Part shown: positions 41,342 through 57,166 of the stretch, one piece after another
Layout: every line of letters starts with the position of its first letter
Numbering within the stretch: the first letter of the stretch is position 1
Assembly (NCBI GenBank): GCA_964036045.1
Contig: OZ038378.1
Coordinates: forward strand, 15,500,001 to 15,564,000
DNA: 64,000 nt
Origin: Eutreptiella sp. 'Long Island Sound 2002'
Taxonomy: Eukaryota; Protista; Euglenida
Direction: 5' to 3'
Program-made: the position numbers and the translations under genes
Notes under the pieces: model-generated
Told to the model about the DNA's origin: nothing
The model's input: the letters and a program-made list of their open reading frames with translations, nothing else
Database searches by the model: none

Positions 41342-44300
41342 ATGAATGCACTTCTTCACCTTTTCTCCATAATACTTGTGGTCACCGTGGTTAATTATGG
41401 GTCATGGGAACGGGTTGCTTCGTATTTCGTTTGGTGGTTGAGATTACTGAGCGGCTGGGCGATAGGTATGCTTTTTTGTCATGTTGTGTGCTGGGAGTGC
41501 ACTGGGAGTATCACTGCCGAGGTAGGTACCGCCAAATCTTTAAAGATTGCTGTGCATGGCGTGAGATCCTTTGCCCTCCATGACCTTGTGAACACATCAA
41601 GTCGCAAACAAAACCCATTCGTGAAGCATGCGACCTTGGTGGGTGAAAAAAGGTAGCAAGCATAGGTTGGTCGGTGGTGAGAGAGGTCAGATGGCCGAGT
41701 TCGGAGAGAGTGACAACTGAATGTGAGGGAATGACAACCATTCGGGGGGGCGGCATGGAACAAGCGTCAAAGAAATGACCGCACAACAATGCATATGGTG
41801 GCGTCTGAGGGGCTCTTGTGAAAGCATTTCCCGTTCAAAAGCGTCTTGGAACGGGGGGCAATGTCGTTCGAAGTTGAACATTCCTCACGTTGCTGGTGTC
41901 GTGCGAATGCACAATGACGCTTGTTGTGCACGGGCGCAATGCGGTGTACCCATTGATTACAATCGAGGTGCTCCTCCTTGTTGACCCATCTACTCTCGCA
42001 CAAATTAACCTTTTTCCTCCTCCCGACTAGGGACGTGGGTTGCCGCGGGCAAGGGCAAGGTAGTCGGCATGTGCATCGGCGCTGGGCCGAAAAGGGGGCC
42101 TTGGACAAGATGATGATGCCGTCTTCGACCTCACTATTGCCCTGTCCAGTGCGCACGTTGCTGCCATCCCTGACTTCGTGCAGCCATTCGGCAATCACAG
42201 CATTGCAGGGAATGTCGCTTGCCAAACGGCTTTCCTCTAAGTCACCCCCCCTTTGCAAGCATTTCCACACGCGCATGGCACAAGTGTTAAATGCAAGGAT
42301 TGTAGACAGGAGAACGCGTAGATTGTGCATTTTAGAATGTGGGCCGTATTGGTTGAATACAGTCGCTCTATTTGGATCCCGTCAAGGGAGTCTTGTGCTC
42401 AGTCGCATCGTCTCATAAGTTTGACAGCGTTCAGTGATGCAAGACCTTTGCTCCGCCATGCAGGGATTCTCACGCTGTTTGCCCTGTCGTATCGCCGCAA
42501 TCCCCTCGGATGCATTCCGGTGGCCATCCTCGCCATCGGTTGGTATTTCGTGCCTAACTGGGTGGAGTGGTGGGTCCAGCCCCAGCAGTGTGTCCTCGCC
42601 GTGCTGCTACTGCTCATCGGGACGGGCCTCTTCTTCTACACTTTCGTACCAACGCTGGGTTTCCTGGTTGTGCCAGGGCTCATCACGTACTGGTCTTATT
42701 ACGGACTCTCTTTGGATGGGGTTTGGGTGTTTCTCTCGTTGGGATGGCTCTCTGATTATGCTCCGCATTTCGTTATCGTGGTGGTCCGGGTATGCGCCGC
42801 TGCACTGCACTGCACTGCACTTGCTTTTGTACAGTGCGGTCACTTTCATCCAACAGATTGTGTGTTTTTGACACAGTTGAACGCCCCACTTCACAGAGCA
42901 CTGTGCCCTGTGAGAGAGCTGCTATCGCTGAGGAGGGGCCCTGGCGTTCAGGCCCTGTGCTCCAAGCTGTGACCATCAATTCCCACCGTGAAAGTTGAAA
43001 GAGTGCAACATTTCGGGCACAACGCTCACACTCATTGTCTTTGGCATTGTGTTTGACACCGCTTTCCCTCCCACTTCAGATTGTCGAATGAGAACCGGTT
43101 TGTAGACTGCGATCGAGCTTCCCATGGCCAGCGCGATTGAAAAATAGAAAAGATGCAGGGCACCATGATAATGCCGCCGTTAAATGGGTAGATTCAAGCC
43201 CTATTTTTGAATTGTAACTTGCTAAAACCCGCCTGTTTCAACCCAAGTTGGGAAGAAAACGATGCAATGGATCTCGTGGCCCTCTCTCAAAGAGAATGGC
43301 CCTCAACCCTTGGTGCGACGAATGCTCGGCACAATGCACTGCGAAGTCCGGCGTTGACCGTTGTCGGGGTGAAGGTGGGGAGGGGGGCAAGACCCAACCG
43401 GACGCCGGTGGCATGGTCTCATACGCACCTCGCAGGGAAACAAACGGGAGGACCATCTCTTTTTCGAGGGACAGGCGCATTGACGCCCTCTTGAGAGTCG
43501 CGCAGCAACAGCAGTGGATCCCTCTCTAGAGGATGGTAGCCCCCAACAATTTGTTCGTGGGAGGCGTCATTTTCGGGAAAGTTTAGTGCCCCAGGGCCTC
43601 ACCTGATGTCGCCCCCAACCAATTCCCAGAGGTTTGTGTGGGGTTCATCAGGACTGTGTAAGGGAGCGTGTGTGAGGCTGATGTACATTACAAGATCTCA
43701 ACACAGCCCTGGGGAAGCTCACCCCAGATGACTTGTGGCGGAGATGCAGCATTGGGTATCGCTCAAGTGTTCACGTGCTCGCTTCTCTGGTACAGGCCTA
43801 ACTGGCTCAGCCCGCCAGACCTCGTATCGCAATGTCCCCATTGCTGAATTCGGATGGTAATGCCCGTCAACGACAAACCCAATTCGTGATGTGCACACAT
43901 GCATTCGCGATAGGTTGGGGCTGAGTCCTTGTATACATCTTCGTTGTTGCAGAGACTGGGGCATTTCATCTCCTGCATCACCTGTATCGTTGTGGGGCTA
44001 ATGTTTATCATGCCAGCCGTCTGCAAGATTCTCAATAATGCGCGCCGCCCGGAGCGCGCCCGTGCCGACGACAGAATGGATGTGGCTCGCCCACTGGTCT
44101 GCTCCCACCTTCCTACGGCAGCCATCATATACTGCTTGTTCCATCGATGCGTGTCTCATCTAGTCACCGGACGTGGTATCGCAAGATCTCCATGCCTGAA
44201 ATCAGATGGTGCCCCGTCACAAAACAGTCCTCAACGTCGGGTCTGCATATTAGCATTTGTCCACATCACCACGACCGGTCGCGGCTTAGTCCGTCCCACC

Positions 44301-57100: not shown

Positions 57101-57166
57101 GACCTTGTACAGAAGATGCAGATCATTCTGCGGGATGACGTAGTGGCCGGTTTCGGACTGGCCTGA
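41342..57166 (+). CDS. Multi-exon gene: polytopic membrane region plus C-terminal HECT E3 ubiquitin ligase
   Basis: Hand-built GT-AG model: 41342-41465, 42464-42789, 43953-44150, 45834-46117, 46816-46953, 47914-48183 (or -48163), [48622-48726], 48800-49001, 49171-49342, 49446-49528, 50647-50938, 51650-51873, 53260-53418, 54069-54245, 56102-56217, 57007-57166. Phases agree except one 1-nt discrepancy near 49230 and one in the G run 49502-49519. The start codon is tentative. Confidence 0.7.
44582..45710. mobile_element. Interspersed element of about 1.13 kb in intron 3, bounded by 13-bp inverted repeats
   Basis: ACCGAGCTGGTGG (44582-44594) and CCACCAGCTCGGT (45698-45710); the interior differs from the GAGGGTTG-rich flanks and contains a (CAG)n tract; no clear TSD. 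Confidence 0.55.
47325..47580 (+). repeat. Degenerate GT-rich tandem repeats (GGATGTGGTGCAGGGTATGT-like) in intron 5
   Basis: Repeated GTGGTGCAG(A/G)GT(A/T)TG motifs visible in the sequence. Confidence 0.7.
48468..48577. repeat. Compound microsatellite (CA)n-(CACG)n
   Basis: Direct reading. Confidence 0.98.
50647..57166 (+). CDS. HECT domain exons (six exons, all phases consistent)
   Basis: IKIHFRRELGQDCGGPRREFF; YYTIGRFLGLALMQ; DVKTVDPEFF; PLRKGGEFQRVTEDNKHEYLQLL; QLNAILAGFHEVVP; DLELLLTG...DLDEWRRYT; VVDWFWDCLSEMDVEQRAKLVAFVTGCSRLPVEGF; HLPSAHTC (Cys at 57059-57061); ends GFGLA* with the -4 Phe typical of HECT domains. Confidence 0.95.
55080..55362. repeat. Long compound microsatellite (CA)n (about 180 bp) then (CACGCA/CGCA)n
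   Basis: Direct reading; lies in the intron between HECT exons 54069-54245 and 56102-56217. Confidence 0.98.

Follow-up and report, generated by a model that had tools for sequence, protein, structure and literature searches.

A 13-exon euglenid gene that appears to fuse a many-pass membrane domain to a HECT ubiquitin ligase

The textbook membrane-embedded ubiquitin ligases are RING enzymes; Hrd1 and Doa10/MARCH6, for example, couple a large membrane domain with many passes to a ubiquitin-ligase domain in the cytosol. RING domains position the E2, and HECT domains form a covalent Cys-ubiquitin intermediate. In the part of the literature consulted, NEDD4-family HECT ligases are described as being brought to membrane substrates by small multi-span adaptors (Ndfip1/2, TMEM127). 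HECT ligases with a membrane anchor of their own have also been described: human AREL1 is a resident of the endoplasmic reticulum (ER) with a single N-terminal span and a cytosolic catalytic domain (PMC12864862), and P. falciparum PfUT (PF3D7_0704600), found at the ER/Golgi, combines four predicted spans with an armadillo-like (ARM) region and a HECT domain (PMC4022464). Here we describe a gene of the euglenid Eutreptiella sp. 'Long Island Sound 2002', located at 41342-57166 on the forward strand of a 64,000-nucleotide stretch of DNA (GenBank assembly GCA_964036045.1, contig OZ038378.1, positions 15,500,001 to 15,564,000; hereafter the window, with position 1 as its first letter). The gene appears to encode a protein of three parts: a many-pass membrane domain, a conserved linker and a compact HECT domain. 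We put at about 0.75 the probability of the statement as a whole, namely that this is a 13-exon gene whose three-part product is a HECT ligase of an internal membrane.

The window is eukaryotic DNA of about 55% G+C with microsatellites and spliced genes. From 41.3 to 57.2 kb, the translated stop-free frames of its forward strand are hydrophobic over the first half of this interval and HECT-like over the second. A full-length homologue was identified in EukProt, the Euglena gracilis protein EG_transcript_2116 (P0002), a single uninterrupted open reading frame (ORF) of 849 amino acids (aa). In P0002, about 400 hydrophobic residues are followed by a Pfam HECT domain at residues 553-833, which covers positions 13-294 of the 306 in PF00632 (E=1.9e-54). 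When compared with the window by tblastn, P0002 gave 13 colinear blocks on the forward strand, spanning its residues 22-849. The joined coding sequence of 2535 nt is a single open frame of 844 codons with no internal stops, and its start codon is the first ATG downstream of an in-frame stop. The 844-aa model and P0002 begin at the same Met, proceed alike from membrane domain through linker to HECT domain, and are 46% identical from end to end, with short gaps only and all 13 exons aligned. Identity in the joined-protein alignment is 38% in the membrane part, 49% in the linker and 55% in the HECT domain. Since P0002 aligns with all 13 exons, a relative or paralogue carries the fusion on a single mRNA. 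The junction of the two halves is in-frame and conserved in two loci that are 46% identical, so that two genes or a chimeric assembly would be very hard to reconcile with it. Codon bias, too, is the same in all three parts, with a third-position G+C of 0.73-0.85. It is very likely that the membrane domain and the HECT domain are a fusion encoded by one gene.

Exon borders were set by a splice-aware search that demanded GT or GC donors, AG acceptors, frame continuity and the best fit to P0002. A GT-AG solution was found for all 12 introns, and 10 of the 12 solutions adopted were top-ranked in that search. Between exons 2 and 3 the second-ranked pair was taken, which has canonical sites and leaves the alignment gap-free; between exons 3 and 4 a GC donor ranked first, and the GT donor three bases upstream of it was adopted. 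Most of the 12 junctions have strong GTATGx donors and YCAG acceptors. An attempt to align P0002 with all of the short exon translations in MAFFT misplaced several exons, and those alignments were left out as profiles.

The N-terminal domain of about 375 aa is strongly hydrophobic and Trp-rich and is followed by about 95 aa that contain the conserved 60-aa linker. Hydropathy averaged over the 844-aa model and P0002 revealed 15 hydrophobic 17-mers common to both proteins at a mean Kyte-Doolittle value of at least 1.0 and nine at 1.6 or more; all 15 peaks lie within residues 3-372. Hydrophobic helices of spanning length are thus conserved in both homologues and membrane insertion is predicted, with the number of spans estimated at about 9-13. 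Local alignment of the membrane parts (residues 1-400) scored 781, as compared with a mean of 52 for whole-sequence shuffles and a maximum of 198 for shuffles within 10-residue blocks, which preserve the hydropathy pattern; judged by these scores, the similarity is more than a by-product of composition. Trp makes up 6-6.7% of residues 1-400, several times the usual level, and 21 Trp are conserved between the homologues, including WW pairs and a W.(E/Q)WW motif. A plastid-targeting presequence was considered for the N-terminus and rejected: the second hydrophobic stretch follows only 15 residues after the first, and such stretches go on for 370 residues.

No known family was found to account for this domain. 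The N-terminal exons of the window had no match in Pfam, P0002 matched no Pfam family but HECT at E <= 0.1, and no sequence in PDB matched the membrane domain at E <= 10. An exhaustive phmmer search of 1.84 billion representative proteins with the largest hydrophobic exon (42430-42798) returned two matches only, P0002 (E=4.1e-15) and P0001, which is the window's own ORF, a 215-aa call on the same contig (ENA ERZ25074135, 2.17 Mb). Word-indexed searches with P0002 residues 1-480 and 280-480 returned P0002 alone, and a scan of the Joint Genome Institute (JGI) metagenomes with residues 270-480 returned none. The membrane-plus-linker module was not found outside P0002 and the window's own ORF among the 1.8 billion representative proteins. 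P0001 (42325-42972) is exon 2 lengthened on both sides into the flanking introns; the public protein collection has the gene solely in this form, and prokaryote-style ORF calling hides the 844-aa protein.

Judged from its sequence, the protein is a clear member of the HECT superfamily with a complete, working-looking domain. PF00632 matches four separate exons of the window at successive positions (53-95, 122-152, 157-210 and 214-252). The last HECT piece ends in ...LPSAHTCSHNLVLP...GFGLA-stop. Its HTC motif, at residues 808-810 of 844 and 34 residues before the end, aligns with the LP.AHTC motif of all relatives, and the C-terminal GFGLA puts Phe841 at position -4. The two-lobed HECT fold was assessed on the homologue: P0002 residues 405-849 matched the HECT domains of WWP2, WWP1, SMURF, Rsp5, ITCH, HACE1, HUWE1 and Tom1 in PDB (E from 6e-45 to about 1e-38). 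An AlphaFold2 (AF2) model of P0002 residues 400-849, built from an alignment of relatives and window exons, had a mean predicted local distance difference test (pLDDT) score of 77.7, with values above 85 over most of the HECT part. Searched with Foldseek, the linker and HECT part of this model matched HECT structures only (E from 1e-24 to 1e-21, probability 1.00), the best of them from HUWE1, SMURF2, Tom1, WWP2 and AREL1. The first 48 residues of the model, right after the last membrane helix, are predicted to be disordered, and the conserved linker forms two to three helices of modest confidence directly before the N-lobe.

The first-pass annotation, made from the sequence alone, had proposed a gene with the same limits and six membrane exons, followed on the same strand by linker exons and an intact HECT domain with a catalytic HTC Cys and a -4 Phe. 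The exons were recovered by tblastn and the splice-aware search, exon 7 encodes the conserved 60-aa linker, and the HECT domain is present with PF00632 on four exons, Cys810 and Phe841. The coding capacity of exons 1-6, put earlier at about 480 aa, has to be lowered to 409 aa. The proposed 10-15 hydrophobic stretches are a fair upper range when 15 weak peaks are counted, but only the nine stronger ones are left at the stricter threshold. The idea that one gene encodes a membrane-embedded HECT ligase is supported by P0002, in which the same three parts, in the same order, align with every exon. An in-frame stop at 48197-48199 had been named as a place where transcripts might end, which would have left the HECT exons to another mRNA. 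This stop is real and intronic, 34 nt inside intron 6. Translation that reads on past exon 6 ends there after 11 codons, and P0002, with the fusion in one ORF, continues unbroken from the membrane part into the linker. If intron 6 were kept in the mRNA, translation through 48164-48199 would yield a 420-aa membrane-only protein without the ligase, and such a form could be a regulated isoform.

In a word-indexed search the closest HECT domains were those of P0003 and P0004, at 36-37% identity (E about 1e-59), with PLTFLS among the motifs that they share with the euglenid domain. P0003 (L002:967-3201) is a protein of 744 aa in one uninterrupted ORF on a 3.4-kb contig of the Logan run ERR14375699; a dinoflagellate spliced-leader sequence had no match on this contig. 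P0004 is a gene model of Symbiodinium natans with an additional triose-phosphate isomerase domain, and two genes may have been merged in it. Both proteins have hydrophobic N-terminal regions with three to five strong peaks, which probably span a membrane. These regions align neither to the euglenid domain nor to each other. From this very small sample there is a hint that membrane tethering is frequent among protist HECT domains of this subgroup; there may be a wider group of such ligases.

Comparison with the described systems places the euglenid protein apart from each of them. AREL1 resembles it as a HECT ligase with its own membrane anchor, and the AREL1 HECT structures 6jx5 and 6loh are among the good matches to the P0002 model. 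However, in AREL1 disordered and low-complexity regions come after one span, whereas the conserved 375-aa domain of the euglenid protein contains about 9-13; a single N-terminal span with a long cytosolic region does not describe a protein with 9-15 hydrophobic stretches over residues 3-372, and the two share no sequence similarity outside HECT. PfUT is likewise a protist HECT ligase with several predicted spans. It differs in its size of 3893 aa, as compared with 844 aa in the euglenid protein, in its four spans and armadillo-like fold, and in its HECT domain, which is UFD4-like while the best PDB matches of the euglenid HECT are of the NEDD4, HACE1 and HUWE1 types. The very large size and ARM region typical of the PfUT and UFD4-TRIP12 group were not found in the euglenid protein, which had no ARM match and whose N-terminal 400 aa are hydrophobic helices. 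In sequence, the euglenid HECT domain is closest to those of WWP2, WWP1, Rsp5 and ITCH, and as in NEDD4-type ligases with adaptors the outcome would be a HECT domain held at a membrane; here, in contrast, the membrane part is fused in cis, PY-motif adaptor logic is not evident, and Pfam found no C2 or WW domains in P0002 or in the N-terminal exons of the window. Hrd1 and Doa10/MARCH6 have the same general plan of a many-pass membrane domain joined to a ligase domain, but their catalysis is of the RING type, their membrane domains have no sequence similarity to the euglenid one, and no RING or RING-CH family was detected by Pfam in the euglenid protein.

Literature searches for a many-pass ('transmembrane') HECT ligase, for EG_transcript_2116 and for relevant Euglena HECT ligases found none, and the word 'transmembrane' is absent from the 2013 eukaryote-wide survey of HECT ligases. 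The contrast drawn in the first-pass annotation between RING-type membrane ligases and soluble HECT ligases is broadly right, but AREL1 (PMC12864862) and PfUT (PMC4022464) are membrane-anchored HECT enzymes. Its remark that the architecture was unfamiliar holds for the many-pass domain joined to a compact HECT and not for HECT proteins with spans of their own. Membrane anchorage of HECT ligases is already known; the novelty, as far as the literature searched goes, is the direct attachment of a large many-pass domain to a compact HECT domain.

In the mechanism that we propose, the N-terminal domain would embed the enzyme in an internal membrane with the HECT domain facing the cytosol. Helices 8, 10 and 12 are each followed by a Lys/Arg-rich loop, and the last helix leads into a basic stretch, KLRRVVRQ; a cytosolic HECT domain fits these features, and the positive-inside rule would place both linker and HECT domain in the cytosol, an orientation that is sensitive to the counting of the weak helices 13 and 14. 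HECT chemistry would follow from family membership: Cys810 would accept ubiquitin from an E2, forming a thioester, and the ubiquitin would then be transferred to lysines of proteins located in or at this internal membrane. In HECT ligases the substrate is generally selected by the N-terminal region. Because this region is here a many-pass membrane domain, a membrane-fixed ligase that marks proteins in or at that membrane is the most economical reading, and a cytosol-facing HECT domain acting on membrane substrates seems to us reasonably likely. By analogy, the membrane domain may be both anchor and substrate-recognition module; it would then do in cis what Ndfip or TMEM127 do in trans for NEDD4-type ligases, and its role would parallel that of the membrane domains of the RING ligases Hrd1 and Doa10. 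A function in ERAD-like or organelle-membrane quality control, as suggested in the first-pass annotation, is hypothetical. A more far-reaching version, in which euglenids would have lineage-specific many-pass membrane HECT ligases whose Trp-rich domain recognises membrane-protein clients within the bilayer and delivers them to the attached HECT domain, as an independent HECT-based counterpart of Hrd1/Doa10, is tentative and on present evidence doubtful.

Three other explanations of the locus deserve consideration. We think it unlikely that the many-pass domain serves chiefly as a transporter, channel or receptor and that the HECT domain regulates this domain or its partners, by self-ubiquitination, turnover or signalling, rather than serving general quality control. 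The domain is large (about 375 aa and 9-13 spans), and Gly-Asp at 283/284, Glu212 and several Pro and Cys are conserved within its hydrophobic stretches, as is common in transporters; yet it matches no transporter family in Pfam or by sequence in PDB, and hhalign revealed no internal two-fold repeat or duplication. Improbable, too, is the suggestion that, although the gene model is correct, no protein is made from this copy, which would be an unexpressed or degenerating paralogue of the E. gracilis gene that is expressed. No transcript-derived protein of this copy was found in the protein collections, but this weighs little, as the expressed homologue is itself present only once, in EukProt; moreover, the frame runs undamaged through 844 codons in 13 exons, no splice site has been lost, the catalytic Cys and the -4 Phe are both present, and third-position G+C content (GC3) is strongly biased in every part (0.73 in the membrane part, 0.85 in the linker and 0.76 in the HECT domain, with second-position values, GC2, of 0.39-0.44 across the three). 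Least probable is a pair of neighbouring genes, a membrane protein ending at 48197-48199 and a soluble HECT ligase downstream, with P0002 as an assembly chimera or an unprocessed polycistronic read-through: the in-frame stop 11 codons after exon 6, the internal 5' ends that are possible given that euglenids trans-splice a leader onto their mRNAs, and the de novo transcriptome from which P0002 was drawn speak for it, but P0002 is an unbroken ORF whose junction region, including the 60-aa linker, is 49-54% identical to exon 7 of the window, exon 7 sits between the halves in phase with both neighbouring exons through canonical splice sites, an intergenic spacer would neither keep the frame nor stay conserved between two loci that have drifted apart to 46% identity, and the structural HECT domain begins only at exon 8, with no ATG-led N-terminal region of its own in evidence.

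Several points weigh against the reading of the gene as a membrane-embedded HECT ligase. The splice junctions and the expression of this copy we infer from a homologue that is 46% identical, and the junction between exons 3 and 4 is the least certain, with a weak donor and alternative placements (exon 4 may start at 45771 or 45781). The source of P0002 is a de novo transcriptome assembly, in which chimeras are possible, although an in-frame chimera colinear with a second locus is unlikely. Conservation is thinly sampled, as two family members have been found. Span count and topology come from a home-made hydropathy scan, and an AF2 model of P0002 residues 1-475 with four aligned window exons, all-helical with a pLDDT of 49 and a predicted template modelling (pTM) score of 0.28, was unusable. 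Substrate recognition by the membrane domain is argued by analogy.

The exons and the evidence for each are listed in Table 1. The introns, 650-1860 nt long, account for 84% of the 15.8-kb gene and contain several repeats, including a degenerate 20-bp (also 74-bp) repeat in intron 5 (47324-47491) and a long (CA)n microsatellite in intron 11 (55080-55360, listed as period-6 CACACA with about 47 copies). About 1.3 kb 3' of the stop codon, a perfect 19-bp tandem repeat occupies 58445-58977 (28 copies, 99% matches) and gives rise to long artefactual ORFs on the minus strand. Ten ORFs within introns or on the opposite strand had no Pfam match and look like chance frames in GC-rich repeats. An Rfam scan of the window returned nothing.

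Table 1. Exons of the gene and its sixth intron, with positions in the window and the basis of each assignment (a slash marks an exon border)
Feature	Position	Strand	Residues and content	Basis
Exon 1	41342..41465	+	aa 1-41; start codon, first hydrophobic helix and start of second	aligns to P0002 aa 1-42, both proteins starting at the same column; donor TAG/GTATGC
Exon 2	42464..42789	+	aa 42-150; about 5 hydrophobic stretches and a Trp-rich motif	phmmer E=4.1e-15 to P0002 aa 44-149; tblastn E=1.7e-22; borders CATGCAG/ and CGG/GTATGC; alignment gap-free
Exon 3	43953..44081	+	aa 151-193; strong hydrophobic helix, then Arg-rich loop	tblastn to P0002 aa 146-193, 44% identity; acceptor TTGTTGCAG/, weak donor GAT/GTGGCT
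Exon 4	45834..46093	+	aa 194-279; 3-4 hydrophobic stretches	tblastn to P0002 aa 200-283; acceptor CTCAACAG/, donor CGG/GTATCT
Exon 5	46816..46953	+	aa 280-325; best-conserved membrane segment, buried Gly-Asp, WRT.H.EKW loop	60% identity to P0002; tblastn E=2e-18; borders CTTCGCAG/ and CAG/GTGGGC
Exon 6	47914..48163	+	aa 326-409; last 2-3 hydrophobic helices, then basic stretch	tblastn to P0002 aa 329-404; donor ACG/GTACTG after 48163
Intron 6	48164..48821	+	in-frame stop 48197-48199; (CACG)27 repeat 48470-48576	
Exon 7	48822..49001	+	aa 410-469; conserved 60-aa linker adjoining the membrane domain	54% identity to P0002 aa 412-471, E=2e-14 (tblastn); borders CTGTGCAG/ and GAG/GTATGC
Exon 8	50647..50938	+	aa 470-566; start of HECT N-lobe	49% identity to P0002 aa 481-571 (tblastn); PDB HECT alignments of the homologue start at the equivalent point
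Exon 9	51650..51873	+	aa 567-641; HECT N-lobe	PF00632 positions 53-95; tblastn E=2e-20
Exon 10	53260..53418	+	aa 642-694; HECT N-lobe	PF00632 positions 122-152; 65% identity to P0002
Exon 11	54069..54245	+	aa 695-753; HECT N-lobe	PF00632 positions 157-210, E=9e-7; 62% identity to P0002
Exon 12	56102..56217	+	aa 754-791; HECT hinge and start of C-lobe	PF00632 positions 214-252, E=6e-11; 62% identity to P0002
Exon 13	57007..57166	+	HECT C-lobe, Cys810 (HTC), Phe841 at -4, stop codon 57164-57166	tblastn to P0002 aa 794-849

So far the family has turned up in euglenids alone, and its function is hypothetical; both limit the impact of the finding. Surveys of HECT architectures that are based on Pfam domains leave membrane spans unrecorded, a blind spot to which proteins of this kind would be subject. 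In AREL1 and PfUT, long soluble regions accompany one and four spans, respectively, whereas the euglenid protein consists of almost nothing but a many-pass domain and a HECT domain. A HECT protein of such compact, many-pass design would show that a ligase working through a covalent intermediate can be built directly into a membrane scaffold, and at 844 aa it would offer a small, tractable model for HECT function at the bilayer.

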